Origin: Macrostomum lignano
Taxonomy: Eukaryota
Assembly (NCBI GenBank): GCA_002269645.1
Contig: NIVC01002977.1
Coordinates: 63,909 to 127,908, forward strand
Length of the DNA stretch: 64,000 bases
Reading direction: 5' to 3'
The translations under genes were made by a program, and so were the position numbers. Below, one piece after another: positions 11,042-44,531 of this stretch (its first letter is position 1; every line of letters begins with the position of its first letter). The notes below the pieces were generated by a model that did no database searches, was not told the origin of the DNA, and saw only the letters and a program-made list of their open reading frames with translations.

Positions 11042-12019
11042 ATGAAATTCCCAGCTAATCCCTATGTGCATTGCTGCTCCAGCTGCACCGCCTGCGGCTG
11101 CGGCGGCGCCACGGCCGGCCGGCACCAGCAGGCGACCCAAGACTTCCGGCCAGCTATCAGCCCAGCCGGCCAGGCCTATTTCCACGGCCGGCTCACCCGG
11201 GAACAGGCTGAGGAGCAGCTGTTAGCGCGCGGCGCCGCCGACGGCCTCTTCCTGCTGCGCGCTTCCACGGGCGGCAACTACGCGGTGAGCATCTGCCACG
11301 CTGGACGGGTGCTGCACTACAGTGTCGAGCGGCAGCCCGACGGCGCCTACCGCATCGCCAACAGCCGCGCCTTCCCCGGCCCCGTGGAGCTCCTTCGACA
11401 TCATGCCGCCCGGCTGGACGGCTTCGTCACCCTCGCCAGCCTGCCGTGCGACCGGCCAGCAGACTCGAGCCCCCTGGCGCTGCAGGGCGTCACCCTGGAC
11501 GACCTCGCCGCTGCCACGGTTGCCAAGGCGACGGAACTCGGCTACGACAGCCTCAACTTGGACGAGCCGCAGCGCGCCCTCGCCTGCCGTCTGGCGCTGT
11601 CAGAGCTGCACCTGCGCCAGCCCTGGTTCCACGGCCGGCTCTGCCGCGAGGAGGCCGAGCGCCGTCTGGCTGCCGCCGGCCACGTCGAAGGCGCCTTCCT
11701 GGTGCGCAGCGCATGCGGGGGCGGTGCCTTTGCGCTGAGCCTCAGCTGCCGCCGCGAGCCGAAGCACTACAGGATCGACCGCCTGCCCAACGGTCAGCGG
11801 CTTCGCATCGAAGGCGGCCACGCCTTCGCCTCGCTAGCCCAGCTGGTCGATCACTACCACCTGCGGCAGGACGGTCTGCTGTGCCGCCTGCGCCGGCCGG
11901 TTCCCCGGCCCGACCACCCTGACGTCGCTCCGAGTGCCGCCTGCGCTACCGTCGGCAGCGGGGGTGGGGCCGGCCGCACCCGCTTCAGCTGGACGGAAAC
12001 GGCGGAATCTGAGCCAGCT
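11042..12019 (+). CDS. SYK: Syk-like exon 1 (N-SH2, interdomain A, C-SH2)
   Basis: YFHGRLTREQAE...FLLR and WFHGRLCREEAE...FLVR...DHYHLRQDGL. The ORF-track extension beyond 12019 is intronic minisatellite. An additional upstream exon cannot be excluded. Confidence 0.88.
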
Positions 12020-15000
12020 GTGAGCTGCTTGCTTCACTGGGGTGGATCTGGTATTCAGTATTGGGGTGCTTTTGGTCCTCAGTATTGGGCTGCATTTGGT
12101 CCTCAGTATTGGGCTGCATTTGGTCCTCAGTATTGGGCTGCATTTGGTCCTCAGTATTGGGCTGCATTTGGTCCTCAGTATTGGGCTGCATTTGGTCCTC
12201 AGTATTGGACTGCATTTGGTCTTCAGTATTGGACTGCATTAGGTCCTCAGTATATGGGGCGAATTTGGTCCTCAGTATTGGTGCAAATTTGGTCCTCAGT
12301 ATTGGTGCAAATTTGGTCCTCAGTATTGGTGCAAATTTGGTCCTCAGTATTGGTGCAAATTTGGTCCTCAGTATTGGGGTGCATTTGGTCCTCAGTATTG
12401 GTGCAAATTTAGTCCTCAGTATTGGGGTGCATTTGGTCCTCAGTATTGGTGCAAATTTGGTCTTCAGCCAACCCCATTTAGGACTGAATGGCTCCCTCAG
12501 TTTCGGGTCAATATTTGGTGTTACCCGAGAAATTTACCCTTTGCCTGCAGTAGTTGCTACCGGGCCTCCCCAATCAAAATTCTCTTCCGACTCCCGCAGC
12601 CGTGTGCGGCTTCCATTCCGTGAGTCCGCTTGAGCTGACTGAAGCCAGTCGGATGTTGGGCTCAATGGTGTGGGCGGATGTGTGAGCTGCCAGCTGAGTA
12701 GATCTCAATGATCTCAATGCTGTCCCATTTTGCACTGTCAGGCACTTTGTTGCGGCCATTGTAAGTGAACGCCTGAGCCTTCTTGCTCCCCGGTTTCCTG
12801 CCTGCCTTTCGCGAGATCCAGCCAGCCAGCCAGCCGACTGGCCTGCGGTCAAAGCCCCGCCGTTAATCCGCTTCCATTTTGAAGGCCGAAGCTGAATTCC
12901 TCCGTCATTTTGCTTGGCGCAAGTGGCGCCCCGCGTGACCCTGCAGCCTTGCGCCTCACGCTGTTTGGGGACACCCAAAGTCTTCCGCAAGATTAGCCTG
13001 CTCCATCCTTTGTGTGCGTAAAATTCCTTCGCCTGCTCAAATCCTTCGGCTCGCAGGGAAATCAGCGGAAACCCCGGCAGTCACGCCAGCCCCGCCAAGC
13101 TCTGTTGCATCTCGGCTCAGTCCGAACTGCGATTTCTTCAAACACAAGCTGCTTCCTCTCAAATGAAGAAATCAGCCGGTGCACTTCCGATTTGCCAGGC
13201 TGCTTGATCCGTTTCTGCGCTCTTCCGTGCTCAACTGGGGTATTCTCCTCCCCGCTCTGTTTTCTTCCCTCCTCAAGGGGCGCGCAGGCGGATGGGAGAA
13301 AGTGCTCTTGTTGGTCGGAGAGGCTGGGCGATGAAGTTGCCGGCCGCCCCGGAGTCGGGGTGGCATTGAATTCCGATAATTGATTTCTCAGCTTCTCAGC
13401 GGCGCCTGACAGGTCCGGCCTGGCCTGCCTGCCTCATCGCATTGGGGGGTTGGGGGCAGCGGCGTGAAGGACTGGCTGCCGCTCACAATGGCCTTTTGTC
13501 CTGAAATTCCCTCCCAGCTGGCTCAGGCATCCGGGCATTGCCGCCGCTGCGCCTGGCCTGACCGGCCCAGATGGCCGTCAGCAAAGCGAAGAAAAGAATT
13601 ACAATTGGAACCGGTGCGGTCTTCTTGCGCAAGTAAAGCGAATGCTTAACGACAGTTGATGGGCAATGTCAGGCCCTGGGGTGCTTTTAAATGCTGTGTT
13701 TACTGCCTCTGGCCGCCGCTTTGGTGTCAACCGTCCGCCATTCCAGTTCGGATTGAATCGCGCCAAAATTCCTGTGCATCAAGGCGCTTGCATCAAACTA
13801 GAGGCTGCAAGTTCTGCAGGTTATTGTCAGGCCGGATTGCAGCCACTCCAGTTCTGGCTCCTTTAGAGTGTCAGACTTTTTTCCGTGCGGTTTCGCTTCG
13901 AAGGCTTGCTTTTTGCTTGCTTTTTGCTTGTGTTTAATTTGCTCTGCAATCAGCAGTCAGGGTGTCTCCCTGGCCCTGCACTCAGCAGTCAGGGTGTCTC
14001 CCTGGCCCTGCAATCAGCAGTCAGGGTGTCTCCCTGGCCCTGCAATCAGCAGTCAGGGTGTCTCCCTGGCCCTGCACTCAGCAGTCAGGGTGTCTCCCTG
14101 GCCCTGCACTCAGCAGTCGGGGGGTCTCCCTGGCCCTGCAATCAGCAGTCAGGGTGTCTCTCTGGCCCTGCACTCAGCAGTCAGGGTGTCTCCCTGGCCC
14201 TGCACTCAGCAGTCGGGGGGTCTCCCTGGCCCTGCAATCAGCAGTCAGGGTGTCTCCCTGGCCCTGCACTCAGCAGTCGGGGGGTCTCCCTGGCCCTGCA
14301 CTCAGCAGTCAGGGTGTCTCCCTGGCCCTGCACTCAGCAGTCAGGGTGTCTCCCAGTCTCAGCTGTCTTCCTTCATCCCAGCCACCTAGCTAATGGCGAC
14401 TATTAGCGGCCCGCCAGCGCTGCCCGGAATGCAATGATGCCGCATCGGCTCCGTCTTCAGCTCTCCCCTAACTGGGCTGGCCAAGGCGCCATTCCGCCTC
14501 GTGCGAGTACCTATGATGCCACAGCCTTCTGCTCGGCCCGCGGGGACTTGGCGCATTAGGCTCGGATTCTCCATCTTTCGGGGCTCGCAAATCTTGTTGC
14601 CGAGTAGCCCCTCCCGTCCCGATCCCATCCCGCCTGATTGATCCGCTGCGGGGATCTCGCCAGAGTCTTTTTAGCCTGGCCCGGCTACTCACTTGAGCTG
14701 CTGGCCAGTTGGAAAATCGGCCGGCCGTCCCGACAGCCTAACTCAATAATGCCGACTGTCCTTCCTGTCCGCCGTGGGTGTTCAAGAGCTGCTATAGGCA
14801 GGACTGCAGGATTACTGAGAGCATGCTGGGCCGCTGGCTGCTAAATTAGCCCGCTGCTGGCCAGGTGACTCGCAGATTTGATTTGCCGCATCCAGTTTGC
14901 ATTATCCAATCCGATTCCGACTGGCTCTTAAACTTTATGGTCTTCTTCAAGAGTCAGTAGAAGCAGGCCTTGCACTTTTGCTTTGGCGCGCACAATGAGG

Positions 15001-18000: not shown

Positions 18001-21000
18001 GTGCTTGTTTTTAATTGACTGGGCCGGCTCGCCGCCTTCTGCCTGTCCTGTTTACTGGCTACCAGTGCGTGTGCACTGCGGCGGGTCTCCGGCTGCTGGC
18101 AGACTGGCGGAAATGCTAAAGCTGAGATTTTTGCCCCGGGAGGACCAGCCAGGTTTACAAGCATCTCCTCAGACTCTCACAAGTGGATTTTGAAACCCGT
18201 AATTTCTAACATTATAGCAAGTATGCTCTTTGAAAGCATGCAGGTCGTTTCCTGGACTAAACTCGAAGTCCTGGACTCGAATCGAGTTTTGGACAAAGTC
18301 GAATTTTCTGACCAGATGTAGCGGGAAAGGGCTCTGGCCTGGATTTTAATCAGTCAGGCGGAGATTTTAAGACGCCGCGTACTTTGCATTGCTCTTATCG
18401 ATGTCTCCCCTGCGCAGAGCCGACAGCTGTCCTCAGATTCTTCCGACATCACTGACCCGACCTCATCGTCTGGCTCCTCCTCGGGCACCTGCTGCCGATG
18501 TCGGCGCCTTTTGGACATCAATTCGACGCTGAACGACAGCCCCAACCGTTTCGTGCCTGCCGCCGCCGCTGCGTCAGTCGCCGTGGACCTCCTGGTGCGC
18601 ATTGATGACGACACCGCTGATGAAGGCGGCAGCTGCGACAGGCCGGAGAAAACTGACCGAGGCGGCAGTGGTGGCTGCACCAGCGACTGCGCGGACATCG
18701 CCGACTGGTGGTACGGCAGCGGAAGCGACAGCGAGGAGCCGCCCGATCTGCCGCCCGCTGACGGCCTCGGAGCCGCTCCGGAGCTGCCGGCTGACCGTCT
18801 AAGGCTCGGCGAGCGCCTCGGCGGCGGCAACTTCGGCGAAGTCCGAGCCGCCCTGCACCGCGACCCGCGCACCGGCCGCGAGGTTCGAGTGGCAGTGAAG
18901 ACCCTCCGTTCTGGCGCCGGCGCCGCAGCTGAAGCTGACGTGCTGGCCGAGGCGCGGGTGATGAGCGGCCTGCGGCATCCCCGGGTGCTCCGCCTGCTGG
19001 GCCTGAGCCGGGCGAACGTCAGCGGCTGCCTGATGCTGGTGCTGGAGCTGGCGCCGCTCGGGCCGGTGAACAAGTTCCTCAGGAAGCACCCGTGAGTGCC
19101 AGCTTAGTTCTTCTGTTTGTCGGCAGCTGCAGCTCGGAAGTTCAGAAAGAAATAAAATGTCAGCGTTTGTTATCGAACGGTATAGTTCATACCTGATTGA
19201 AAATTTTGAAGCGAAGTAGGGTCCTCTCACTAGCAGTCACTGGCAGTTCAAAGCCAATTTTTTTTCTGAAATTAATATAAAATGCTTGCACCCACTACTA
19301 GCCTACTGTAAGTAGATGAATTGGCAGGTTTCATCGCGTACCCTTAATATTTTTTCACAGTTGCCATTTTTGCCAGATATCTTTATTACGGTAAATTTAT
19401 AGACATCTTTACTAGAGTCTCCTTTCCATCTTCACGAGTCTCCTTTCCATCTTCACTAGAGTCTCCTTTCCATCTTCACTAGAGTCTCCTTTCCATCTTC
19501 ACTAGAGTCTCCTTTCCATCTTCACTAGAGTCTCCTTTCCATCTTCACTAGAGTCTCCTTTCCATCTTCACTAGAGTCTCCTTTCCATCTTCACTAGAGT
19601 CTCCTTTCCATCTTCACTAGAGTCTCCTTTCCATCTTCACTAGAGTCTCCATTCCATCTTCACTAGAGTCTCCATTCCATCTTCACTAGAGTCTCCATTC
19701 CATCTTCACTAGAGTCTCCTTTCCATCTTCACTAGAGTCTCCATTCCATCTTCACTAGAGTCTCCATTCCATCTTCACTAGAGTCTCCTTTCCATCTTCA
19801 CTAGAGTCCCTTCACTCCATCTTCACTAGAGTCCCTCCATTCCAACTTCACTAGAGTCCCTTCACTCCATCTTCACTAGAGTCTCCATTCCATCTTCACT
19901 AGAGTCTCCATTCCATCTTCACTAGAGTCTCCATTCCATCTTTACTAGAGTCTCCTTTCCATCTTCACTAGAGTCTCCATTCCATCTTCACTAGAGTCTC
20001 CTTTCCATCTTCACTAGAGTCCCTTCACTCCATCTTCACTAGAGTCCCTCCATTCCAACTTCACTAGAGTCCCTTCACTCCATCTTCACTAGAGTCCCTC
20101 CATTCCAACTTCACTAGAGTCCCTTCACTCCATCTTCACTACAGTCCCTTCACTCCATCTTCACTACAGTCCCTTCACTCCATCTTCACTAGAGTCCCTT
20201 CACTCCATCTTCACTACAGTCCCTTCACTCCATCTTCACTACAGTCCCTTCACTCCATCTTCACTAGAGTCCCTCCATTCCAACTTCACTAGAGTCCCTT
20301 CACTCCATCTTCACTAGAGTCCCTTCACTCCATCTTCACTAGAGTCCCTCCATTCCAACTTCACTAGAGTCCCTTCACTCCATCTTCACTACAGTCCCTT
20401 CACTCCATCTTCACTAGAGTCCCTTCACTCCATCTTCACTACAGTCCCTTCACTCCATCTTCACTAGAGTCCCTTCACTCCATCTTCACTACAGTCCCTT
20501 CACTCCATCTTCACTACAGTCCCTTCACTCCATCTTCACTACAGTCCCTTCACTCTATCTTCACTACAGTCCCTTCACTCCATCTTCACTACAGTCCCTT
20601 CACTCCATCTTCACTACAGTCCCTTCACTCCATCTTCACTACAGTCCCTTCACTCTATCTTCACTACAGTCCCTTCACTCCATCTTCACTACAGTCCCTT
20701 CACTCTATCTTCACTACAGTCCCTTCACTCCATCTTCACTACAGTCCCTTCACTCTATCTTCACTACAGTCCCTTCACTCTATCTTCACTACAGTCCCTT
20801 CACTCCATCTTCACTACAGTCCCTTCACTCCATCTTCACTACAGTCCCTTCACTCCATCTTCACTACAGTCCCTTCACTCCATCTTCACTACAGTCCCTT
20901 CACTCCATCTTCACTACAGTCCCTTCACTCCATCTTCACTACAGTCCCTTCACTCCATCTTCACTACAGTCCCTTCACTCCATCTTCACTACAGTCCCTT

Positions 21001-22292
21001 CACTCCATCTTCACTACAGTCCCTTCACTCCATCTTCACTACAGTCCCTTCACTCCATCTTCACTACAGTCCCTTCACTCCATCTTCACTACAGTCCCTT
21101 CACTCCATCTTCACTACAGTCCCTTCACTCCATCTTCACTACAGTCCCTTCACTCCATCTTCACTACAGTCCCTTCACTCCATCTTCACTACAGTCCCTT
21201 CACTCCATCTTCACTACAGTCCCTTCACTCCATCTTCACTACAGTCCCTTCACTCCATCTTCACTACAGTCCCTTCACTCCATCTTCACTACAGTCCCTT
21301 CACTCCATCTTCACTACAGTCCCTTCACTCCATCTTCACTACAGTCCCTTCACTCCATCTTCACTACAGTCCCTTCACTCCATCTTCACTACAGTCCCTT
21401 CACTCCATCTTCACTACAGTCCCTTCACTCCATCTTCACTACAGTCCCTTCACTCCATCTTCACTACAGTCCCTTCACTCTATCTTCACTACAGTCCCTT
21501 CACTCCATCTTCACTACAGTCCCTTCACTCCATCTTCACTACAGTCCCTTCACTCCATCTTCACTACAGTCCCTTCACTCCATCTTCACTACAGTCCCTT
21601 CACTCCATCTTCACTACAGTCCCTTCACTCCATCTTCACTACAGTCCCTTCACTCCATCTTCACTACAGTCCCTTCACTCCATCTTCACTACAGTCCCTT
21701 CACTCCATCTTCACTACAGTCCCTTCACTCCATCTTCACTACTGACCGGAATCCCCGATCGCAAACCCGCAGCGAGTGCCCAGTCGAGCAGCTCACAGAG
21801 CTGGCCCACCAGGTCTCTCAGGGCATGCGCTACCTGGAGTCCCGCCGCCTCGTCCACCGCGACTTGGCCGCCCGCAACGTCCTGCTGGCCGGCCGGTGCA
21901 GCGTCAAGATTTCGGACTTCGGCCTGAGCCGCGCGCTGGCCGGCGGCAGCGACTATTACCGTGCCGATGCGGCCGGCCGCTGGCCGCTGAAGTGGTACAG
22001 CCCTGAGTGCATCTACTACTTCCGCTTTAGCTGCCAGTCGGACGTCTGGAGCTTCGGCGTCACCTGCTGGGAACTGTTCAGCTACGGCGCCAGGCCCTAC
22101 CACGACCTCAAGGGCACGGAGATCGTGCAGATGCTGGAGCGGGGCGACCGCCTGCCCTGTCCGGCCGCCTGTCCGGGTCCGGTGTACGAGCTGCTGCTGC
22201 ACTGCTGGCGCTACTGTCCCGACCAGCGGCCCAGCTTTGCCTGTCTGGCCGCCCGCCTGGCCGCCATGCCGAGGTCCGCTGGACTGGATTGA
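11042..22292 (+). CDS. SYK: Syk/ZAP-70 family tyrosine kinase (tandem SH2 + kinase), 3 coding exons, about 723 aa
   Basis: Exons 11042-12019 (donor GTGAGC, phase 0), 18418-19091 (acceptor ccctgcgcag; donor GTGAGT, phase 2) and 21773-22292 (acceptor cccgcag). Phases join into a 2172-nt ORF. Two SH2 domains (FLLRAS, FLVRSA) with no intervening ankyrins. Kinase motifs GGGNFG, VAVK, HRDLAARN, DFGLSRAL..DYY..G.WPLKWYSPECIYY.RFS.QSDVWSFGV are Syk-type. Confidence 0.92.
12045..12467. repeat. 24-bp minisatellite (tttggtcctcagtattgggctgca variants) in Syk intron 1
   Basis: Visible tandem units; 8-aa periodicity in the overlapping spurious ORFs. Confidence 0.95.
13944..14354. repeat. 32-bp minisatellite (cagcagtcagggtgtctccctggccctgcact)
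   Basis: About 13 tandem units; the same peptide recurs in all three frames. Confidence 0.95.
15226..16728. mobile_element. hAT-family non-autonomous element, 1503 bp, in Syk intron 1
   Basis: TIR TAGGGGGCGACC / GGTCGCCCCCTA; perfect 8-bp TSD TTGTCATG (15218-15225 and 16729-16736); GC-rich cccggg/cccgac subterminal motifs; nearly pure A/T core at ~16380-16570. Confidence 0.9.
18418..19091 (+). CDS. SYK: Syk-like exon 2 (interdomain B and kinase N-lobe)
   Basis: LGERLGGGNFGEV, VAVKTL, alphaC EARVM, LVLELAPLGPVNKFL; splice phases match both neighbours. Confidence 0.9.
19405..21741. repeat. 2.3-kb polarised minisatellite in Syk intron 2 (23-bp units grading into 25-bp units)
   Basis: ctagagtctcctttccatcttca (23 bp) at the 5' end, mixed units around 19800-20350, then homogeneous ctacagtcccttcactccatcttca (25 bp) to the 3' end. 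Confidence 0.97.
21773..22292 (+). CDS. SYK: Syk-like exon 3 (kinase C-lobe)
   Basis: QVSQGMRYLESRRLVHRDLAARN...DFG...WYSPEC...SDVWSFG; stop TGA at 22290-22292. Confidence 0.95.
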
Positions 22293-22814
22293 ACTTTGAC
22301 CTCGCCTGACCTCTGACACAATAGGAGTGCATAGTAACTTTAGACTTTATGTGGCCTGCTACTAGCTGTCTGAGCTTGCCGCCCCTGCCCGCGGCTCCAC
22401 TGGTTAAACTGGTCTGCCTCTGCGCACCTGTCTCATCTCACTTTCACCTTATCTGTGTGTATCTGTCTGTCAAAACCCGAGCCTGAGCCCAGCAACCAGT
22501 AGGCCGTTTTTCATGTCATTTTCTCTACTGCGTCAAGCAGCAGTAGGTGTCGCTATTTAATACTTGTAGTAGTATTGAATTCGGCTTCTTTTATGTACTT
22601 TCAATATAGTATTAGCTGTGTCTGCGGTTCCGGCTACTCGAGCTCGATGCAGGTCAGGTGCAGCAAGTGCTGCTGGTTTTGCATTCATTTGTACCTCTGC
22701 GGGATTCTCGCTGGTTAGAGCAGCGTATGCCTGTAATTCGATGTAACCTATTTAATCTTTGTTTGTACCTATTTTATAGGTAAATATTGATTTAGTCAGC
22801 TATGCGATATTACG

Positions 22815-23215
22815 GTTAGGCAGGTGTACAAGATTAGGGTTAGGCAGGTGTACAAGATTAGGGTTAGGCAGGTGTACTATAGTAGGGTTAGACAGGTGTA
22901 CAATATTAGGGTTAAGCAGGTGTACAAGATTAGGGTTAGGCAGGTGTACAAGATTAGGGTTAGGCAGGTGTACAAGATTAGGATTGGGCAGGTGTACAAG
23001 ATTAGGATTGGGCAGGTGTACAAGATTAGGGTTAGGCAGGTGTACAAGATTAGGGTTAGGCAGGTGTACTATAGTAGGGTTAGACAGGTGTACAAGATTA
23101 GGGTTAGGCAGGTGTACAAGATTAGGATTGGGCAGGTGTACAAGATTAGGGTTAGGCAGGTGTACAAGATTAGGGTCAGACAGGTACAAGATTAGGGTTA
23201 GGCACGTGTACGAGA
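22815..23215. repeat. 24-bp minisatellite containing TTAGGGTTAGG
   Basis: Unit caggtgtacaagattagggttagg and variants. Confidence 0.95.
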
Positions 23216-23495
23216 TCGAGTTAGACAACAAATATTAAAAATCTTAATTAAAAAATTGAGCGACACTAGACTAAGGCGAATACAATTGCTTAGAGCTGTT
23301 TGCAGTATTTTTTCTTTTTTATCACAGCATTCGTTGGGTTGCCAGGTCACAGTTGCTGAGACTATACTCAACTGACCCGACGAATGTCATCGCTTCTCAA
23401 ATTCCCCACTGCATTGACAGCCTACCTGTGTAATAAAATAATGGATTTGCATTGTGTCCGCACAGCCGATTTCATTGAGAAACGGAGAGGCTTTA

Positions 23496-23874: not shown

Positions 23875-24827
23875 GCTTTACTGAGTTTTGTTATCTGCCA
23901 TCATTTTTAGCTTTGCCACCTTGGGTGTAGGTAGTTTGCCGGGCTTGCTCCATTCATCGCATTCTTAGCATGGCCAGCTGTGAAGTGATAATCTAGCTGG
24001 GATTCACTGAGCCTTGCGATGGTTGCAGGGTCAAAGTCCATTCCGCACTGGCCCTCTCCTCTCGTTTGCGGTTTGGCGAGCCCCGCCTCCCTCCCTGCAC
24101 CGTGCAGCCCCACCACCCCAGTCACCCCAGCCCCATGACGCCCACCCCACCGCCGCGGGTATTTAAAGGCTCGCGCTGGCTCCCCGCCCGGCCCGCTGCC
24201 GTTCAAAACCCCCGAGCCCCAACTCCCTGCCGCTCTACAGCCTGTGCCTGGCCTCCCTGTGTGCCTTCAGCTAGCCTGCTTTTTTCTAACAGAGGAAACG
24301 CGAATAAGCGAGGGCGGTTTACTTTGATTGTGTCTGAAGAAATTGCGCTGCCTTTTTTAACTTTGCCGTCAACTTGAAGATTCAACTGGAGAAAAAGGAC
24401 CGGCTCTGCTTTAGCAGCTTTTCTTGCTTACAGAGGAACTGAAGCTTTCAGTCATCCTGGTTTAGTAGGGCTGGCCCCGCTCCTCATTGCACGTAAGGCC
24501 AGCCTCTCTTCCCCCCTCCCACTCGAGCCCTCTGTGTCCACAGGCTAGTGGGGCAGAGACTTGGCGAGAAAATCGATAAAGCAGCCAAAGTGCAGCAAAC
24601 TCTGCTTCCCACTCCTGTTCCCCGGCTTTGCCCATCCATCTTCCCGAGGTCACGCTTTATCCCCCATCCATCTTCCCGAGGTCACGCTTTATCCCCATCC
24701 ATCCTGCCCGCCGCTCTGCCTTCCACTCTGAATCGGACGAATTTCATATCTAAGACCGGACACGCAACCTGTGAAGCAGCGAAGCCTCAATCAAGTTCGC
24801 CATTTTAACTTTTGCCTTCCAGCGAAT

Positions 24828-26402
24828 ATGCTGTCATCACGAATTCTGGAAAAAATCATTGGCTCTCGCGCCGGACACCGCGGCCAGACTGAATACCAGG
24901 CTAAATTCAAGAGCTGCGCCGCCTCCGCCAGCTACGTCTGGGCCACCGAAGCCGACATCATCACCCACTGCCCGCAGAACCGCCAGCTGCTGGAGCAGTT
25001 CAAGCGGACCAACCGGCACAGCCGGGTGCTCGGAGCTGATGAGGCCGCCTCGGCCCTCGCCCGCAAGCGCTCGCACCAAAGCCTGACGGAAGACCAGCTG
25101 GCCAAGCGGCGCCACACCTCGGCCAGCTCAGCTGACAAAACGCCCGAGTACGAGCAGCAGCCGCGCCACCCGCCCGGCAGCCGGCGGGCCCGCATAGAGA
25201 AAATGTGCACCGCCAGGAAGCGCAAGGAGAAGCTGCACAGCAGCACAAAAGAAATAACTGGCGCCAGCCTACTGCAGCGCACCGACCCTGGCAGGAGCCG
25301 CGCCCCCGGGCCCAGCGGCCTGGTTGCCACCCGCAAAGGCCAGCAGCAGCCGGTCCTGCCGGATTTCCAGAGGTCCGACAGCTTGGCGCAGGCGCTCAGC
25401 CGCCCGTCGCCCGTCAGTTCCAGTGCCGGCGCACTTCGCCAGCTTTGCTGCAGCGACGCCGTTGCCGCCGCCTCGGCTAAACTCGCCGCCAAATCGGCGT
25501 CGGCACCGAGTTTGAGCAACCTCCAGCGCCTTCTGGCCGCCGGCGACCCGGCCACCCTGTTCGCCGCCGCCAGCTTGGCCAGCGCCGCCACGCTGAACAG
25601 CAAGTTTGCCGGCTCCGGCCGCCTGCTGCACTCAGCCGCTCGGGCGGACCGGCGCTCCGCCGACCTCCTGCTGGCCCTGCTGGCTGCTGGCGCCGAGGCC
25701 GACGCAGCCGAAGCCAGCGGCATCACCCCGCTGATGCTGGCCGCACAGGCTGGCGATGCCACCGCCGTGCACCATCTGCTGCATTTCGGCGCGCGGCCGG
25801 ACACCGGCGGAGACCAGACCGCCTCCGCCCTGCTGCTGGCCGCCCGCTCCAACCACTGGGATGTCGCGGCCGGGCTGCTGTTCCACGGTGCCGAGTTCGA
25901 CCAGCTGCTTAGGCGGGTGACCGCCTCCCAGCTGGCCAGCTGGACGGACCGCCTGGCCGAGCCGCTGCTCAGCGCGCTGCGCCGCGTCACCGGCCGGCCG
26001 TCCAGCTTTGTCAGCGTCCAGCCGCCGCATCTGTTCGGCGTGGCGCCCGGCGCCAGGTGCGCCTTTGAATTCGTCAGCCCAGAAGGCCTGGCAGAAACGG
26101 ACACCCGCCTGCTGCTGGCCGGCCTCATGGAGCTCAACGGCCGCGGCGGCGTCCGGCTCCGCCGGGTGGCCGGCTGCCAGCTGCTCGCCCGCCTGGAGCT
26201 GAACGGTCGCGAGCTCGAGCCCGAGCCCAGCAAGGACTGCCTCTACGTCTACAGAATTGACGAAGTCGGCGCGCCTCCCGGCCAGATCAACCGGGTGCAC
26301 CTGGTCATGCGGCCGGAGTGTCCGGCCCGCTGCCGGCTCCGCCTGGTGCTGCTGCCGGCCGCCTGCACCCAGCCGCGCGGACCCGACGCCGGTGCCGCCT
26401 GA
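24828..26402 (+). CDS. MPP8-like paralog B: degenerate chromodomain, ankyrin repeats, divergent C-terminal beta-domain (524 aa from ATG 24828)
   Basis: LEKIIGSR...TEYQAKFKS...YVWATEADI (chromo fold pattern); GITPLMLAAQAG, TASALLLAARSNH (ankyrin). The C-terminus aligns by eye with paralog A (LELNG/VKLNG, GQINRVHL/GELNELEL, RLRLVLLPA/QLRVLLQA). A candidate acceptor ttttgccttccAG at 24821-24822 lies 5 nt before the ATG. Confidence 0.75.
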   Translation: MLSSRILEKIIGSRAGHRGQTEYQAKFKSCAASASYVWATEADIITHCPQNRQLLEQFKRTNRHSRVLGADEAASALARKRSHQSLTEDQLAKRRHTSASSADKTPEYEQQPRHPPGSRRARIEKMCTARKRKEKLHSSTKEITGASLLQRTDPGRSRAPGPSGLVATRKGQQQPVLPDFQRSDSLAQALSRPSPVSSSAGALRQLCCSDAVAAASAKLAAKSASAPSLSNLQRLLAAGDPATLFAAASLASAATLNSKFAGSGRLLHSAARADRRSADLLLALLAAGAEADAAEASGITPLMLAAQAGDATAVHHLLHFGARPDTGGDQTASALLLAARSNHWDVAAGLLFHGAEFDQLLRRVTASQLASWTDRLAEPLLSALRRVTGRPSSFVSVQPPHLFGVAPGARCAFEFVSPEGLAETDTRLLLAGLMELNGRGGVRLRRVAGCQLLARLELNGRELEPEPSKDCLYVYRIDEVGAPPGQINRVHLVMRPECPARCRLRLVLLPAACTQPRGPDAGAA

Positions 26403-26488
26403 GCTGCCCGCGGCCCGGAAGGGGGCCTCCGCCACCGGACTCTGGAAGATTTTTGGAATTGATCTCGCATCAAGTCACGAACGTTTTG

Positions 26489-26494
26489 AATAAA
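26489..26494 (+). terminator. Candidate polyadenylation signal for MPP8-like B
   Basis: AATAAA 87 nt after the stop codon. Confidence 0.5.
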
Positions 26495-26994
26495 CATTGG
26501 CCTCTACCTGCGGCTTTTTAGAAAAAATTATCAACTGGGCCCTGCACATTTAATGCTATTTGAACCCCCTGGAGCCCCAAATTTATTCACCCGCGTGTTT
26601 TAACTCGAGCCAGTCTTACAGTTTTCTTTTTCTGTTTCTAGTTTGTGTTTTACTCGAAGCAGTTTGACTTTTGTGTGCCCTCTGTGCGAGCGTACTTACC
26701 TTATTTGGTATGCAGCGTTCCTGGTTACTGGTTACTCTGATTACTGTTAGTTCCAAATGTTGTCTTGATGGTTTTGGGCCATTGCTTACTATCCAATCGC
26801 ACTTGTAAAAGGCTTGCAACAATAAACTTGGATAGATGCTTCTGCTGCTAGTAGCGACCTGTCCCACTGGCTCTGCAGGTGCAACTCGCGCTCCAGTAGT
26901 TACTCATTTAAACAGTGAAGGCAAACCTTGGACCATTAGGCTAGAACCGTAGTTCTTGTTCCTGTCCCAACTGGCATCTTCATATGCCTAACAT

Positions 26995-27670
26995 CCTCAG
27001 ATCCCAGCTGGCACAAATCAGATCCCAGCTAGCACACATCAGATCCCAGGATTCCCAGTTAGCACACATCAGATCCCAGCTAATGCACATTAGATCCCAG
27101 CTAGCGCACATCATATGCTAGCTGGCACAAATCAGATCCCAGCTAGCACACATTAAATCCCAGGATTCCCAGTTAGCACACATCAGATCCCAGGATTCCC
27201 AGTTAGCACACATCAGATCCCAGCTAATGCACATTAGATCCCAGCTAGCGCACATCAGATGCCAGCTGGCAGAAATCAGATCCCAGCTAGCACACATTAG
27301 ATCCCAGCTGGCAAACATTAGATCCCAGCTAGCACAAACAAATCAGATCCCAGCTAGCACAAATCAGATCCCAGCTAGCACAAATCAGATCCCAGCTGGC
27401 ACAAATCAGATCCCAGCTGGCACAAATCAGATCCCAGCTGGCACAAATCAGATCCCAGCTGGCACAGATCAGATCCCAGCTGGCACACATTAGATCCCAG
27501 CTGGCACGCATTAGATCCCAGCTGGCACACATCAGATCCCAGCTGGCACAGATCAGATCCCAGCTGGCACAAATCAGATCCCAGCTGGCACAAATCAGAT
27601 CCCAGCTGGCACACATCAGATCCCAGCCGGCACACATCAGATCCCTGCTGGTACACATCAGATCCCAGAC
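26995..27670. repeat. 20-21-bp minisatellite (cagatcccagctggcacaaat) between the two MPP8-like genes
   Basis: Tandem units with 7-aa periodicity in spurious ORFs. Confidence 0.95.
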
Positions 27671-27758
27671 AGCGCTCCACAAAGTACGGGTTACGCTTAG
27701 AATATCCAAGCGAGCTGTAATATCCGGCTGCTCAAATTCAACGACCGGAACCCTTCAG

Positions 27759-30047
27759 GTGGACTCGAACGAGGAGGGCTCGCTGTCCGACAGCAGCGGC
27801 GAGGAGTTTGAGATCGAGCGCGTGCTCGACCGGCGCAGAAACTCGAGCACGGGCGCTATCGAGTACCTGGTGAAGTGGGCGGGCGACTGGGGCGCGGACA
27901 GCTGCCAGTGGCTGGAGGAGGCCAGCCTGGCCAACGCGCAGGAGGCCGTGCGCGCCTTCCTACAGCGAAGCTCCAACAAGGCGGCCACGGCCGAGCCCGC
28001 TAGCTCCACTACGACCAGCAAGGCGGCGAAGCGGCTTCCAAGGCAGCAGCCGCCGCCTCCCCGCAGACAGGCGTTCATCCTGTCCGACCGCGACTGCAGC
28101 GACGAAGACGGAGAGGTTAAGCCGCGAAAGTCCTCTTCGAAAACTTCTTCGAAAAAGAAGAAGCATAAAAAGAAGAAGACAGACGAGGCCGCTGCGGCCG
28201 CCGGCACACGAGAGGACGGCGCAGAATTCGAAGAAGGCGAAATCTCCGACGACAGCTCGTCGGCTGTGCGGCGCAGGAGCAGCGGCCGGAGCCGAAGCGG
28301 GAAGCATCGCAAACGGCACCGGGAAGAGCGAAGCGGGAAGGCCCAGTCGGCTGCGGCTGAGTCGACCACTGCGAAGGCGCAAGTGCAGCAGGCGGAGTCG
28401 CAACTGCAACCGCCCCTGGCGCAAGCACAACCACCGGTTTTAGAAGTGCAACAGCGGGAGTCAGAAATACAACAGCCAAAGCCGCAGGTGCAGCAGCCGC
28501 AATCTAAGGCATTTATAATTGCTGCACCGGCCTACAATGCTGACGACGGCGCTGATGATGACGATGACGAAGACGACGAAACGCCGTTCTCGGAGCTGCG
28601 CATCGCCGAATCTGGCGACACACCGTCGGAAGGCGACGGCGACTGCGAAGCAGACGGGGATAGAGACGGCGATGAAATTGACGCTGCAGATGGCGATGGC
28701 GGCGGTGCCGAGCAGCTGGCCGACCAGGCTGACGAAGACTTGGACAATGGCAATGACATCAGCGAGGAGGCGGGCGGCAGTGCAGCTACAGGCCCTAGCG
28801 ATCCTCGCCGGCTGCACGGAGCGGCGGCTCAGGCAGCTACCGACGGCCGGGCGTCGCTGCCCTCAGGCGCGGTGATCCGCAAGCGCCAGACCAAGCTGCT
28901 GAGCTTCGCCGGACGCGAAATCCCGCAGCCGAAGTCTGCGGCCGGTGCCGGCCAAGCATCGGAGCCCGATGCCGCTGCTGCCGCGGCCAAGTCGGCCCGG
29001 TCCGAGTCCGACGCCTTGAAGGCCACGCTGGCCTCCGAGCTGGTGAAACCGGCGCGGCAGGTGCACGGCAGCCCGGCGGACATAATGCGGACCCTCCTGG
29101 CCGAGCGGGACGCCGAATTCCCGCCACGCCTGCTGGGCGAAAAGGAGCTGCTGGAGCTGGTGCGGAACCCGGACCGGCCGCTGGCGGCGCTGAGCCAGGC
29201 GCTGCGGCATCCCGACTGTCCCAGCTTGAACAAGATTCCGGAGAGCCGCACCAGCTGGCTGCTGCACTGCGCAGCCAAGTGCGGCCTTACGGAGGCCCTG
29301 CAGCTGCTGCTGCAGTTCGGCGCCGACCCCGACCTGCCGGAGCGCCGCACGGGCCGGACGGCCCTCATGACAGCTGCCGGCCTCGGCCTGCAGATCGCCT
29401 GCGAGCTTCTGCTGCAGGCCCGGGCCAGCCTGGAGCTGCGGGACCACCGGGGCGACACGGCGCTGCTGCGATCGGCGCGCCTGGGGCAGTTCCCCACTAT
29501 GCGCTACCTGCTGTGGCGCGGGGCCGAGTTCGCCGAGCTCTGGCCCGGCCGGATTGCCGACCTCCCCGAGGAGGCCACGAAGACAGCCCGACTGTGGGCC
29601 CACGAGCTGCAGGGCCTGCTGCTGAACGAGATCGAATCCGTGGTCAGAAACTGCCTGCCCGGGGCCCTGCTGACCTGCTCCGTGTCCCCGCCCTTCGTTG
29701 TCAGCCCCAGCGCCGGCCTGCGCCGCGTCCTGTCCTTCAGCACCCCAGAGGACCTGAAGGAGGGCCCGGCGGGCCGCTGCTTGGACTGCCTGTTCATTGC
29801 CGTGGCCGACTTCCCCGGAAACGGCGCCGCCCACCCCATGCTTTCCGGCCCGGACATGGTGTCCGGCGTGAAGCTCAATGGGGTTGTGCAGCCCAGCTTC
29901 ACGCCCCCGCATCACTTCCTGACTGGCTGTCAGCCGCTGCGGCCGCCGGGCGAGCTTAACGAGCTAGAACTGCAGCTGCTACGGGAGAACGAAGGCATGA
30001 GCCAGCTGCGGGTGCTGCTGCAGGCCTACAGACTCTCTCTGGACTGA
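27759..30047 (+). CDS. MPHOSPH8: MPP8/MPHOSPH8-like protein A: chromodomain, long acidic/basic disordered linker, ankyrin repeats, C-terminal beta-sandwich
   Basis: EFEIERVLDRR...IEYLVKWAGDW...QW (chromodomain with aromatic cage); LLHCAAKCG, GRTALMTAAGLG, GDTALLRSARLG (ankyrins). The C-terminus 'LSGPDMVSGVKLNG...HHF...NELELQL...VLLQAYRLSLD' resembles, from memory, the MPP8 C-terminal domain. The ORF begins immediately after acceptor cccttcAG (27757-27758) with GTG; the first in-frame ATG is residue 443. Confidence 0.82.
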   Translation: MDSNEEGSLSDSSGEEFEIERVLDRRRNSSTGAIEYLVKWAGDWGADSCQWLEEASLANAQEAVRAFLQRSSNKAATAEPASSTTTSKAAKRLPRQQPPPPRRQAFILSDRDCSDEDGEVKPRKSSSKTSSKKKKHKKKKTDEAAAAAGTREDGAEFEEGEISDDSSSAVRRRSSGRSRSGKHRKRHREERSGKAQSAAAESTTAKAQVQQAESQLQPPLAQAQPPVLEVQQRESEIQQPKPQVQQPQSKAFIIAAPAYNADDGADDDDDEDDETPFSELRIAESGDTPSEGDGDCEADGDRDGDEIDAADGDGGGAEQLADQADEDLDNGNDISEEAGGSAATGPSDPRRLHGAAAQAATDGRASLPSGAVIRKRQTKLLSFAGREIPQPKSAAGAGQASEPDAAAAAAKSARSESDALKATLASELVKPARQVHGSPADIMRTLLAERDAEFPPRLLGEKELLELVRNPDRPLAALSQALRHPDCPSLNKIPESRTSWLLHCAAKCGLTEALQLLLQFGADPDLPERRTGRTALMTAAGLGLQIACELLLQARASLELRDHRGDTALLRSARLGQFPTMRYLLWRGAEFAELWPGRIADLPEEATKTARLWAHELQGLLLNEIESVVRNCLPGALLTCSVSPPFVVSPSAGLRRVLSFSTPEDLKEGPAGRCLDCLFIAVADFPGNGAAHPMLSGPDMVSGVKLNGVVQPSFTPPHHFLTGCQPLRPPGELNELELQLLRENEGMSQLRVLLQAYRLSLD

Positions 30048-30236: not shown

Positions 30237-30242
30237 AATAAA
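30237..30242 (+). terminator. Candidate polyadenylation signal for MPP8-like A
   Basis: AATAAA 190 nt after the stop, in U-rich 3' sequence. Confidence 0.4.
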
Positions 30243-39365: not shown

Positions 39366-41652
39366 GTGAGAAATGTTCTTTGCATATCACTAACTTTGGC
39401 TATTATTTTAATTCTATGATAATCCAGGTTAATCCAAGCTAAATCCAGGTTGCAAAGCGAGCATATGGCATCTGGTTTTCGGAGTGCATTTTACCGGCTG
39501 GGGAGGCAAAAGACACGCATAGTTCTCCTTTTCCTCTATCGCCTGCGTCACCCCAAGGCCTGTCTTTCCTTTATCCTGCCTGCCCTCCTCAGTCCCGCTG
39601 TCTGACTCACGCGACATGCCCGGCTCACACGGTCCACACACACAACAAACACGCAATGCACGAGGCCTCCCTTCGCTCCATACCAGTCTGCCACGGCGCT
39701 CAATAAAATCTGCGTGCCCCGGCCTGGGTCTGGCGCGGCGGGGGGTGGCGGCCTCCCTCCCCCATCCAAACCCCCTGCCCAGCCAGCCAGCACCCCGGGC
39801 CTTCTGCCCACCCCACTCCGCCTCCTTTTCACATTAAAACCAACGCCTCTCTGCCCAACTGCTCTCCTGCCTTCCTCCCGTCTTCTCAACTTGCAGTTCA
39901 GCAAGCCAGCGCCCCGACTCTGGGCGGGCCGGTAAGTCAGACTTGTATGAATGCATGCATACATATTGTCCTGTTAGTGCTGGCCACAATCCTTGCCATC
40001 TTTCCGCTCCGCTTGTGTGGCCCCACCCAAGCAGTGTGCTCCATGCTGTGCTCATGCTCACCCTCCGATCTGCGGCGTCTTACCTGGCATTATTGGAGCT
40101 CTGTAAGCCAATTCTGTCTAATACTGTCAGGTAATGATGTCTAGCGGAGGAGCGATCGCCGGTTGCCCCTCTCCCCACATGTTCAAAATTTTGCTTTTTG
40201 AGACAGTGTGAAATAGTGAAAAATGCAATAAAGTGAATTAAACAGAGCATCAGTATGATATTTTTGCCTATTTTGTCTTTCCGTGTTTTTTCGTGCATTT
40301 GAGCTGATTCTGCTTGAACTTGTTTTCGTGTAGTAAGAGTAGGTAAAGGTAGGCAGCAAAAGACTTAGTTAATAGTCAATAGCAAAATAGTTCTGATCTT
40401 TTCATCTGTATTAGACAAACAGGCCATTAATTAAACTTTAGTTAAACTAAATGAGTAGTTTTTTAACATCGTTGTTTCTAGTTTTTAAGAATGGCATATT
40501 TCATTCGTTTGACGGCCGGATAATATTAATATTAACAGTTTCCTCAAATCCAGCCCAATAAATTTTCTAAGAAACGACTCCAGCTCATTTTCTCAACCGT
40601 CTGATTTGCGTGACTCAGACGCTGTCCGCAATATTTTTTCTTTGTCGTGTCTAGCTCCGGCTCGAGTTTCTGGTTCCGCGATTGTTGCTAGACGCGGTGA
40701 GAGAGACCCGATAATGGGGTGGGTTGGGCGCCTTGTTCTGCTGCTTGTTGAGACGAGTAACGAGTTGATGAGGCAGACCCGCAGACTCCTGCCCTGTCGC
40801 ACCGCGTGCTCCAGCTGGAAATTGGAAATTTTGAGTCAACCAACCTGCACCCCAGGCCGCGGGGGGACTCGGGCTGCTTAAAAGGCAGAATTAATTGAGT
40901 GACCGCGCGCCCCAGCCGGTCAATTCGGTCAACTCCGCTCTGAACAATGGCCATGCCCACCAGTTGCGCAACTGGTTTTTATTATTAGCCAGGATTCCCT
41001 GGACTCCAGCTTTCCTGTTGCCAACCAAGTCCCCTCTCGCTGTGTACCTCCGTCTCTGAGTGCCCGCTGGCTGGCACCTGGAAACTGCAGTGCGATATGA
41101 GGCCCCAGCAACTCGGGGCTCGCAGTCTCCGGGCCCCGGCATCAGTTCTATTGATAGAAAATAAAAATCCTCTGGAATGCGGGCTGCCTGAGTTCCTATG
41201 GCAGCTCGCTCTGCCCTTTTGGTTGCCGGGTGCTCACAGTCGCGGATGAGCAGCTGGCCCGGCCGGTCCTCACTTGCTCTGCCCCGCCTCCGCTGCCGGG
41301 CCAGTGTTGCCATGGCAATTAGCCTGACAAGCAAGCGGACTACTCAAAAAACTACAGTTTATGTCACCTTTCATTCCGGCTCATGGGGGTGGAGCTTCAT
41401 CTGTCTGCCTGCCTCTGGCTGAGCTAATTGGGACCGCGCTCAGTGCTAATGAGTGATTTCCCGATCGATTATCGATTAGTGTCCACATTGAGCGCATTGT
41501 TGTATTCATGATTATCGGGGAAAACGGTCTTCAATTGCATGAGTTGCCTTGCCATCCAGCAGTCTCTAGGCACCAGATTAAGGTCAGGCGCTGCATCGTC
41601 AGACAGCTTCAAAAAGAATTTCATCGTCAGTGAAAGCCACTTTATGCGCTGG

Positions 41653-42674
41653 CTGGCAGCTATCTCACCTGACAGCTATCTCACCTGGCAGCTATCTCGC
41701 GTGGCAGCTATCTCACCTGACAGCTATCTCACCTGGCAGCTATCTCGCGTGGCAGCTATCTCACGTGGCAGCTATCTCACGTGGCAGCTATCTCACGTGG
41801 TAATTAATCTCACGTGCCAGCTATCTCACCTGGTAATTAATCTCACCTGGCAGCTATCTCACCTGGTAATTAATCTCACCTGGCAGCTATCTCACCTGGC
41901 AATTAATCTCACCTGGCAGCCATCTCACCTGGCAATTTATTTCACCTGGCAGCTATCTCACCTGGCAGCTATCTCACCTGGCAGCTATCTCACCTGGTAA
42001 TTAATCTCACCTGGCAGCTATCTCACCTGGCAATTAATCTCACCTGGCAGCCATCTCACCTGGCAATTTATTTCACCTGGCAGCTATCTCACCTGGCAGC
42101 TATCTCACCTGGCAGCTATCTCACCTGGTAATTAATCTCACCAGGCAGCTATCTCACCTGGTAATTAATCTCACCTGGCAGCTATCTCACCTGGCAGCTA
42201 TCTCACCTGGCAGCTATCTCACCTGGCAGCTATCTCACCTGGTAATTAATCTCACCAGGCAGCTATCTCACCTGGTAATTAATCTCACCTGGCAGCTATC
42301 TTATAACTGGTAATTAATCTCACCTGGCAGCTATCTTATATCTGGTAATTAATCTCACCTGGCAGCTATCTCACCAGGTAAGTAATCTCACCTGGCAGCT
42401 ATCTCACCTGGCAATTAATCTCACCTGGCAGCCATCTCACCTGGCAATTTATTTCACCTGGCAGCTATCTCACCTGGTAGTTAATCTCACCAGGCAGCTA
42501 TCTCACCTGGTAATTAATCTCACCTGGCAGCTATCTCACCTGGTAATTAATCTCACCTGGCAGCTATCTTATACCTGGTAATTAATCTCACCTGGCAGCT
42601 ATCTTATACCTGGTAATTAATCTCACCTGGCAGCTATCTTATACCTGGTAATTAATCTCACCTGGCAGCTATCT
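41653..42674. repeat. Composite 16/17-bp minisatellite (ggcagctatctcacct / ggtaattaatctcacct)
   Basis: Two related units interspersed over about 1 kb. Confidence 0.95.
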
Positions 42675-43779
42675 TTTCTCCCTGTCCTCTTCCTGGGTGA
42701 AGAATATTCCTTCTACATTCTAGGACCCCTTAAATTTCTATTGTGATTGATCTTGCAGCAGACTGCAGTCTCCCGAGGAGGGGCTGGGTGTCTCCAGGGC
42801 AGCCTCTTAGGCTCACAATAGATTTGCCAGGTACGAGTTTAGCAACTCTCTGACAATTGTCCGGCCAGGGCAACTCAACACATGAAGTGGGTAGTGATGT
42901 GGGCTCCGCCTCGCTCTTCTCCGCAGGGGCCGCCACCCCCGCCGCGGGACAATGAGTGGCTACAGGAGGGCGACGCGGCGAAGGAGACGGCAGGGGTCCA
43001 GCTGTAGCGGGTCAGCCCAGGACAGGCCTGAGTGGGGCAGCTCTGGGCCTCTCCAACACCCCAAATGGGGCGATGAGCGCTCAGAGTGAGCGATGCCACC
43101 CATGCTGCGAGCTGCCAAGCCGCACAGGGCAGGCTCGCCCTTATTATTGACTCACAGCTGCTCACAGCTGCCGCAGGCGGAGTTGGGGCGGGTGCGGCAG
43201 CGAGACGCCCTGCGGTGCAGCGGCGTCGGCCGTCGCCGTGACGACAGAAATTTCATTTTCTCAGGCCAAGCTGTGAGCCACAGGAGCAGCAGGCAGCTCT
43301 CACACCGCTCCTCAGTCCTGCCTTCCCCAGTGTTTGCCGTGTCGTGAGAAGGTTTGAAATTTTGCACTGCAGGAATTTGCGCTGTCTCGCCTGAGCAGAT
43401 TAAAGCAGCTGATTCTTTGCTATAAGCAAATTTGAAAAACATTTCACCTGCTGTTGATGCGGCAGCTTTTATGCAGTTTTTTCGTGGGGAATGCTGCTTC
43501 AGGAGCTACAGATAAATGTCTGTTAAATAACTCCTGAGCACTAGCTCCTTGTGCGTCTAGTCCCTTGTTGGCTATCTGGTTGTGTGCCGGTCGGGTGTCT
43601 GAGCTTCTGTCAACAAAAAAATTCGGCTTTGTCTGAACCGCTTGCAGCATGGCTCTGCCCACAGCTGCAACTTCTTTTCATCTCAGTAGCAGATTTAGCA
43701 GATTCCCTTGTCGTCGGTCCCGGGAGCGAAGCTGCACGGTCTGGGTTGGCTTCTGTAAGGGGAATTTTCCGTTTTTCAT

Positions 43780-44531
43780 GGGGCGGATTCTGCTTTTATG
43801 GGGCGGATTCTGTTATCCAAGGAGCGGATTCTGTTATCAAAGGAGTGGATTCTGTTATCAAAGGAGCGGATTCTTTTATCGAAGAAGCGGATTCTGTTAT
43901 CGAAGGAGCGGATTCTATTATCAAAGGAGCGGATTCTGTTATTCAAGGAGCGGATTCTTTTATCGAAGAAGCGGATTCTATTATCAAAGGAGCGGATTCC
44001 GTTATTCAAGGAGCGGATTCTGTTATTCAAGGAGCGGATTCTGTTATTCAAGGAGCAGATTCTGTTATCAAAGGAGCGGATTCTGTTGTCAAAGGAGCGG
44101 ATTCTGTTATTCAAGGAGCGGATTCTGTTATTCAAGGAGCGGATTCTGTTATTCAAGGAGCGGATTCTGTTATTCAAGGAGCGGATTCTGTTATTCAAGG
44201 AGCGGATTCTGTTATTCAAGGAGCGGATTCTGTTATGCAAGGAGCGGATTCTGTCATCAAAGGAGCGGATTCTGTTATCGAAGAAATGGATTCTGTTATC
44301 AAAGGAGCGGATTCTGTTATTCAAGGAGCGGATTCTGTTATTCAAGGAGCGGATTCTGTTATCAAAGGAGCGGATTCTGTTATTCAAAGAGCGGATTCTG
44401 TTATTCAAGGAGCGGATTCTGTTATTCAAGGAGCGGATTCTGTTCTTCAAGGAGCGGATTCTGTTATTCAAGGAGCGGATTCTGTTATTCAAGGAGCGGA
44501 TTCTGTTATTCAAGGAGCGGATTCTGTTATT
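43780..44531. repeat. 21-bp minisatellite (ggagcggattctgttattcaa)
   Basis: Tandem units; 7-aa periodic ORFs in several frames. Confidence 0.95.

Follow-up and report, generated by a model that had tools for sequence, protein, structure and literature searches.

Does the human silencing hub (HUSH), which has been described as "conserved from fish to mammals" (PMC11295320) and as a system of "vertebrate genomes" (PMC7532188), have a counterpart outside the vertebrates? This question is raised by two neighbouring genes, here called A and B, in the free-living flatworm Macrostomum lignano. The stretch that we analysed (the window) is the final 64 kb of contig NIVC01002977.1 of M. lignano assembly GCA_002269645.1, in which AT-rich, repeat-filled spacers lie between GC-rich genes. 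All positions below are those of the window unless another contig is named. We conclude, with a probability of roughly three in four, that B is the M. lignano homolog, and probably the ortholog, of MPP8 (MPHOSPH8), the HUSH subunit that reads a histone mark for this transposon-silencing complex, and that A is a long-standing tandem paralog of B. The two proteins are very divergent new members of the known MPP8 family, in a phylum where this family is undescribed. Our literature search found no paper that pairs MPP8 with flatworms, and nothing specific on a flatworm or other invertebrate MPP8 or HUSH.

The preliminary description of this locus had placed two adjacent same-strand genes here, and both are present exactly as placed. 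Gene A occupies 24828..26402 (+), including its stop codon, and encodes 524 amino acids from an ATG start; gene B occupies 27759..30047 (+), including its stop codon, and has 762 codons. Each is an uninterrupted open reading frame (ORF). The two products have one domain order in common, namely a chromodomain, a disordered linker, ankyrin (ANK) repeats, a long helix and a beta-rich C-terminal domain, so that the order claimed earlier is found in both genes, with the qualification that the chromodomain of A is degenerate. An alignment of A with B extends over their ANK and C-terminal parts (BLASTP, E = 1e-8, 29% identity; MAFFT, 28%), and the C-terminal domains taken alone also match, as had been claimed (Smith-Waterman, z = 8.6). 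The motifs SVxPP, FxxPExLxE, LNG and PPGxxN are kept in both C-terminal parts. At only about 28% identity between the two proteins, the duplication that produced them is, judged by sequence divergence, old.

Long ORFs come cheap in this region, because the GC content at third codon positions (GC3) of A and B is 0.80-0.85 (0.85 in A). The antisense and alternative-frame ORFs that overlie the two genes (24932-26233, 25632-26435 and 28863-29915, all on the minus strand; 267-433 amino acids) were set aside as by-products of a sense-strand GC3 above 0.8. The genes themselves can be told from such chance ORFs by comparison between assembly copies. The order SH2-kinase gene, A, B was found on three contigs, namely the contig of the window, NIVC01002606.1 (L002) and NIVC01000195.1 (L004). 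Both coding sequences (CDSs) on NIVC01002606.1 are identical to those of the window, whereas NIVC01000195.1 carries a diverged copy, whose flanks differ by 2.9-4.0% mismatches and, over about 2.1 kb, by 31 indel events (about one per 70 nt). Against this copy, A has 19 substitutions (1.2% mismatches) and no indel in 1575 nt; for B the count is 39 substitutions, again without any indel, over 2289 nt. At the protein level, A is identical on NIVC01002606.1 and 98.1% identical, without indels, on NIVC01000195.1. Because the same arrangement recurs on three contigs and the CDSs are free of indels while their flanks carry 31, we regard A and B as real genes rather than GC-rich chance ORFs. Hidden polyploidy or duplication has been reported for M. 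lignano, and the triple locus fits it.

The identity of the pair depends above all on the C-terminal domain of B. The human MPP8 query sequences that we used were 100% identical to PDB 8QFB chain B, and the chromodomain was checked against 3LWE in the same way; 3LWE and 3QO2 are structures of the human chromodomain, and 8QFB is that of the C-terminal region. The 8QFB structure covers human MPP8 residues 563-860 and contains five ankyrin repeats, of which the last helix (alpha10) is double the usual length and is packed against a PINIT-like beta-sandwich (PMC7618375). In B, the AlphaFold2 (AF2) models (confidence score pLDDT 50-89) and the Pfam Ank_2 match (aa 502-590) give five ankyrin-type helix pairs at aa 461-632 (29139..29654, +); the models have 10 helices in this region, the last of which, aa 604-632, is 29 residues long. 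A PINIT-like beta-sandwich follows at aa 633-762 (29655..30044, +) and reaches the C-terminus, as recognised by Smith-Waterman alignment, hhalign, and AF2 with Foldseek.

BLASTP of B 425-762 against human MPP8 returned a single collinear alignment of B 495-761 to human 598-859 (E = 2e-9, 24% identity), which spans the ANK region, the helix and the beta domain up to a terminal 'LLxAYRxxL' (B, QLRVLLQAYRLSL; human, KVKLLIGAYRVQL). Taken alone, B 633-762 aligned to human MPP8 741-860 with a Smith-Waterman score of 72, compared with 27.8 +/- 4.8 for shuffled sequences (z = 9.2), and none of 3000 shuffles reached this score. When a profile of A and B was compared with the human domain by hhalign, the probability was 81%, the E-value 1.2e-5 and the score 37.9 (z about 11.6); for 300 shuffles the scores were 12.0 +/- 2.2 and at most 21.5, and for the reversed sequence 8.0. 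An AF2 model of B 588-762, built from an alignment of A and B alone (pLDDT 61, pTM 0.59), shows seven strands after a helix of 29 residues. Searched by Foldseek against 350,542 PDB chains, this model retrieved the four 8QFB chains at ranks 1-4 (E = 1e-5 to 7e-5; query TM-score, TMq, about 0.50; 161-171 columns; 21-22% identity), and at ranks 5-12 the PINIT domains of PIAS3, PIAS2, Siz1 and Siz2 (E = 6e-4 to 5e-3; 11-16% identity). The nearest structural neighbours of the human sandwich are Siz1, PIAS2 and PIAS3 (PMC7618375), so the neighbour set of the B model is the one published for human MPP8. It had been proposed that both genes are MPP8-like, and that this would fall if the last 150 or so residues did not resemble the MPP8 fold. 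The C-terminal 130 or so residues of B match the human PINIT-like domain in sequence and in predicted fold, so the proposal does not fall on this count.

The N-terminal part of B is a clear chromodomain at aa 13-72 (27795..27974, +), which Pfam Chromo recognises at aa 17-70 (E = 1.6e-9). Human cage residues F59, W80 and Y83 align to F17, W40 and W44, from which we infer that B can bind methyl-lysine. Both A and B carry a one-residue insertion in the chromodomain (in B, AGDW in place of human KGY), which marks their shared origin. Between the chromodomain and the ANK repeats of B lies a linker of about 365 amino acids (27981..29078, +), which is of low complexity and charged, with K-rich, D/E-rich and S/A-rich parts; no Pfam domain falls in aa 75-440, and the disorder assigned to this part follows from its composition alone. 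Its human counterpart, residues 125-535, is disordered as well (PMC7618375).

Taken end to end, B therefore has the order of human MPP8: a chromodomain with its cage, a charged linker, five ANK helix pairs with a long last helix, and a PINIT-like end. Every one of these structural features of the family was found in B. In A, the three-aromatic cage is lacking, and the PINIT-like domain is recognised solely by transitivity through B. Identity between the C-terminal domains of B and human MPP8 is 21-29%, and the terminal 'LLxAYRxxL' occurs in both. The differences from human MPP8 are also clear. B is diverged so extremely that HMMER is blind to the relationship, its alpha10 helix exceeds that of the human protein by about 14 residues, and apart from the insertion in the chromodomain it has Val in place of F813. 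It is intronless, it lacks a genomic ATG, and it is accompanied by a tandem paralog whose reader is degenerate. To our knowledge, no tandem reader-degenerate paralog accompanies vertebrate MPP8.

A number of results weigh against this assignment and have to be set beside the evidence above. The C-terminal model of B is only of moderate quality (pLDDT 61, TMq 0.50), and when the longer segment B 425-762 was modelled by AF2, the ankyrin part was folded and the C-terminal domain was left unfolded (pLDDT below 35). Neither phmmer nor hmmsearch found anything at E <= 10 when the C-terminal domains were run against PDB sequences. A profile made from the C-terminal domains of A and B, searched against 1.84 billion representative proteins, found only B, A and one spurious bacterial match; this match (P0005) is an Ig-like repeat protein whose score was summed over 9 repeats, and it was rejected. 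The chromodomain of B is closer to CDYL than to MPP8, both in the search against PDB (CDYL, 1.3e-9; MPP8, 6e-4; cpSRP43 weak, E = 0.0027) and by Smith-Waterman alignment (z = 19.1 against CDYL, 13.1 against human MPP8). Taken alone, the C-terminal domain of A is not significantly similar to human MPP8 (z = 1.3), so the link of A to MPP8 runs through B. Between homeologous copies, the ratio of non-synonymous to synonymous divergence (dN/dS) of A is 0.50, which is not significantly below 1 (p = 0.10). Human F813, a residue required for binding to the DomI domain of TASOR (PMC7618375), aligns to V710 in B and to E462 in A, so that this TASOR-contact residue is not conserved, and the equivalent of human R741 in B is ambiguous (R611 or R630). 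Finally, no gene for a TASOR-like or Periphilin-like partner was present among the scanned ORFs of the window, the proteome not having been searched.

Some of these results would be expected if the architecture were convergent, that is, if a chromodomain and ankyrin repeats had been fused independently, as in chloroplast cpSRP43, and joined to a C-terminal domain unrelated to MPP8. Chromo and Ank are common, promiscuous domains, and this explanation would account for the preference of the B chromodomain for CDYL and for the silence of HMMER on the C-terminal domain. However, the nearest PDB relatives of the human MPP8 chromodomain are likewise CDY and CDYL, and HMMER is too insensitive for the relationship between B and MPP8. 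Pfam has no model that covers the PINIT-like domain, even in the human protein, so there is no curated family model to pass or fail. Against convergence stand the similarity of the C-terminal domain alone to human MPP8 741-860 in both pairwise and profile alignment, the retrieval of 8QFB ahead of all other chains by the predicted fold, and the collinearity of B with MPP8 up to the final residues. Moreover, cpSRP43 has a chromodomain, four ANK repeats and two further C-terminal chromodomains, whereas A and B each have a single N-terminal chromodomain (Pfam). We consider convergence largely refuted and very improbable.

The remaining database searches were of little help in placing the family. 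Full-length B, searched against an index of 5.8 billion proteins, retrieved B itself and two irrelevant matches, low-complexity words having filled the candidate list. The C-terminal domain of B alone retrieved nothing from the same index, B itself included, which makes this search uninformative, and the human MPP8 chromodomain retrieved 14 short exon fragments and no full-length MPP8 orthologs. In whole-protein searches against PDB, generic ankyrin proteins and designed ankyrin-repeat proteins crowded out everything else, which makes these searches uninformative on family. NCBI lists the M. lignano proteins as hypothetical; its copy of B is PAA88366.1, named 'hypothetical protein BOX15_Mlig016440g1, partial'.

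Other known families resemble A and B in one part only. The PIAS/Siz SUMO E3 ligases have a PINIT beta-sandwich fold like that of the B model, but no match to zf-MIZ (SP-RING) or SAP was found in A or B at E <= 1, and both proteins end with the beta domain. An identity of A and B as PIAS/Siz-type E3 ligases was rejected for want of an SP-RING. CDY, CDYL and CDYL2 have the chromodomains closest by sequence to those of A and B; CDYL, however, carries an enoyl-CoA-hydratase-like domain instead of ANK repeats plus a PINIT-like domain, and Pfam finds no hydratase in A or B.

If B is an MPP8 homolog, what has become of A? Its N-terminus, aa 1-62 (24828..25013, +), gives only a sub-threshold match to Pfam Chromo (E = 0.012; 15.9 bits, where the cut-off is 25.1). 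Smith-Waterman alignment to the CDYL chromodomain gave z = 8.3, with none of 3000 shuffles reaching the score, and by this sequence similarity the segment is a real chromodomain relic. In a gapless alignment to CDYL, the cage positions of A are R5, F27 and C30/A31. Since only one of the three cage aromatics is left, A is predicted to be reader-dead and most likely no longer reads methyl-lysine. The linker that follows (aa 65-255) has no domain matches and is of low complexity, charged and rich in Ala and Ser, its disorder again being assigned from composition alone. Ankyrin repeats lie at aa 255-353 (25590..25886, +), supported by Pfam Ank_2 at aa 267-358 (E = 6e-10) and by the alignment to B, and a long helix with the C-terminal beta domain, paralogous to the PINIT-like domain of B, occupies aa 354-524 (25887..26399, +).

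A could therefore be a decaying duplicate that has no function of its own. Apart from the loss of two of the three cage residues and a chromodomain below the Pfam threshold, this explanation would draw on the dN/dS of A, on its alanine-rich, low-complexity sequence and on the failure of its C-terminal domain to match human MPP8 when taken alone. The comparison of copies points the other way. The ORF of 524 codons is intact in all three assembly copies, and its 1575 nt have no indel where the flanks have about one per 70 nt. Mismatches in A amount to 1.2% against 3-4% in the flanks, and an acceptor motif, an ATG and an AATAAA are all still present in A. The absence of any indel from three intact copies argues that the ORF of A is maintained by selection, and we regard decay as quite improbable. 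The earlier label of a specialised paralog is thus reasonable in that A keeps its ANK and C-terminal domains while it has lost two of the three cage aromatics; on the other side, its dN/dS gives it no significant sign of constraint. B differs in this respect, with a dN/dS of 0.21 over the whole CDS (p = 2e-6). Its ANK and C-terminal block, at 0.09 (16 synonymous and 4 non-synonymous changes), is the most constrained part of the protein and is under strong purifying selection.

The synonymous divergence (dS) of A between the window and positions 7367-8941 of L004 is 0.019, below that of B (0.042) and below the divergence of flanking non-coding DNA (0.03-0.04). Possible causes are constraint on codon usage, GC-biased constraint or gene conversion.

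The start of B raises a further point, since the preliminary description had given each gene a single coding exon. Both are uninterrupted ORFs, but no in-frame ATG occurs in B from the upstream stop at 27330 to codon 443, hence B is not a self-contained coding exon and its start codon is absent from the genome. Directly before its first codon lies CTTCAG (27753..27758, +). The spliced leader (SL) of M. lignano is 35 nt long and ends in ...TTGCATG, and its trans-splice acceptor motif is [T/C]TNCAG (PMC8629364), which CTTCAG fits. An SL joined at 27758|27759 reads AUG-GUG-GAC..., giving M-V-D-S-N in frame, with the predicted junction SL|GTGGACTCG. The 60 nt that precede the junction are 100% identical in the diverged copy on NIVC01000195.1, and the 'partial' in the NCBI name of the B copy agrees with a missing start. 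Because there is no in-frame genomic ATG and the ORF opens directly after CTTCAG, the AUG of B must come from splicing, and it is presumably supplied by the spliced leader at this acceptor. For A, a TTCCAG that fits the same motif lies 5 nt before the ATG (24817..24822, +); an AUG donated there would not be in the reading frame of A, so that the use of the leader at this site is uncertain. A likely poly(A) signal of A, AATAAA, lies 87 nt past its stop (26489..26494, +), and a candidate for B lies 190 nt past its stop (30237..30242, +).

The 1.36-kb spacer between A and B consists for about half of its length of a minisatellite with a 21-bp unit (26997..27668, no strand assigned; Tandem Repeats Finder), without which it measures about 0.7 kb. 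This adjusted distance is below the 1-kb operon threshold applied to M. lignano after removal of repeats (PMC8629364), and A and B possibly share a transcript in the manner of an operon. The diverged copy has a spacer shorter by about 300 bp.

What, then, could an MPP8 homolog do in a flatworm? The chromodomain of human MPP8 binds H3 trimethylated at lysine 9 (H3K9me3) and methyl-lysine mimics in SETDB1, ATF7IP, G9a and GLP, and the ANK and PINIT-like region binds the SPOC-DomI part of TASOR through R741, F813 and F548 and is required for HUSH silencing (PMC7618375; PMC7532188). By analogy, the chromodomain of B would dock at H3K9me3 or at the H3K9-like methyl-lysine motifs found in subunits of H3K9 methyltransferases, and its ANK and PINIT-like block would form the platform for a TASOR-like scaffold carrying SPOC-DomI. 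B would thereby tether a HUSH-like complex to heterochromatin and help to spread H3K9 methylation over transcribed repeats. A, with its retained ANK and PINIT-like platform, might replace B as a subunit that does not read, or might compete with B for the scaffold. Proteins of the TASOR-like DUF3715-SPOC-DomI type have been reported from all over the Metazoa, with no flatworm named in the part of the source available to us (PMC10578480), which makes a partner plausible.

It is also conceivable that A and B descend from MPP8 but act outside any HUSH-like complex, as general heterochromatin readers or adaptors, for instance by recruiting H3K9 methyltransferases directly, or in some other nuclear role. 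Periphilin or TASOR may be missing from flatworms; alternatively, the interface has perhaps been rewired. The replacement of F813 in both proteins and a C-terminal domain too diverged for any HMMER link would agree with this, as would the lack of a partner gene among the scanned ORFs of the window; in addition, the human MPP8 chromodomain itself binds methyltransferase subunits directly (PMC7618375). On the other hand, the block that binds TASOR in human MPP8 corresponds to the most constrained part of B, interfaces commonly co-evolve, and TASOR-like proteins with the MPP8-binding DomI are reported throughout Metazoa (PMC10578480). A role apart from HUSH is in our view unlikely.

Returning to B as the reader of a HUSH-like complex, the predicted architecture suggests a HUSH-like system outside the vertebrates, and 'candidate invertebrate HUSH module', the term used in the preliminary description, is a fair label for this hypothesis. 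The further idea of two HUSH-like complexes is speculation. In its fullest form, the proposal would be a HUSH-like system in which the reader has been duplicated, with B reader-competent and A reader-dead on the same TASOR-like scaffold, A forming either a second, H3K9me3-independent complex or an antagonist, and with both subunits expressed from an operon-like pair resolved by the spliced leader. We hold this composite picture to be distinctly unlikely for now.

Two known systems are instructive here. In vertebrates, the paralogs TASOR and TASOR2 share MPP8 in HUSH and HUSH2 (PMC11532391). The likeness lies in the duplication of one subunit of a silencing complex, which could give two assemblies. 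The difference is that the scaffold was duplicated in vertebrates and MPP8 is shared, whereas in M. lignano it is the reader-type subunit that was duplicated, as far as the genes go. The RITS complex of Schizosaccharomyces pombe (Chp1-Tas3) has been proposed as an analogue of HUSH (PMC7532188). It likewise couples a chromodomain reader to a SPOC scaffold in transcription-dependent silencing by H3K9 methylation, but its chromodomain and SPOC lie in one protein (Chp1) and no ANK and PINIT-like module is present, so the resemblance is functional and not one of family membership.

That the full MPP8 architecture is recognised in a free-living flatworm makes a pre-vertebrate origin of the pairing between reader and scaffold more plausible. 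HUSH-like scaffolds in invertebrates have already been published (PMC10578480). If the reader-duplication reading were true, HUSH would have been present in the bilaterian ancestor and would have diversified in a way unknown in vertebrates. The reader-degenerate paralog A is, for the MPP8 platform, a naturally occurring separation-of-function allele. M. lignano is amenable to RNA interference and transgenesis. It could therefore be used to ask whether the surveillance of intronless DNA by a HUSH-type system is an ancestral trait, and whether such surveillance has a part in the silencing of transgenes in this model.

Several further features were noted in the window. The upstream neighbour of A is a multi-exon tyrosine-kinase gene on the plus strand (11042-12412 and 18511-19095), with two SH2 domains followed by the kinase in a Syk/ZAP-70-type layout; a 723-aa product was called. 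Dense minisatellite arrays with units of 16-31 bp, up to 70 copies and strong GC skew lie at 20004-21742, 22809-23216, 41653-42674, 43767-44531, 46206-47342, 47760-48819, 49093-49620, 49982-50800 and 51869-52453. Most of the long ORFs at 41-53 kb arise from these arrays, one of them with spurious Pfam matches (LbR_Ice_bind, DUF745), and the ORFs of this part were rejected as minisatellite artefacts. An rve-type integrase ORF (55733-56806, +) adjoins an ORF for a protein-primed family-B DNA polymerase (58962-60710, +; DNA_pol_B_2, E = 2e-18), and since the two lie side by side, they suggest a Polinton/Maverick-like element. A microRNA hairpin of the mir-8/mir-200 family was identified at 40071-40144 (+; Rfam RF00241, 51.5 bits, E = 2e-8).

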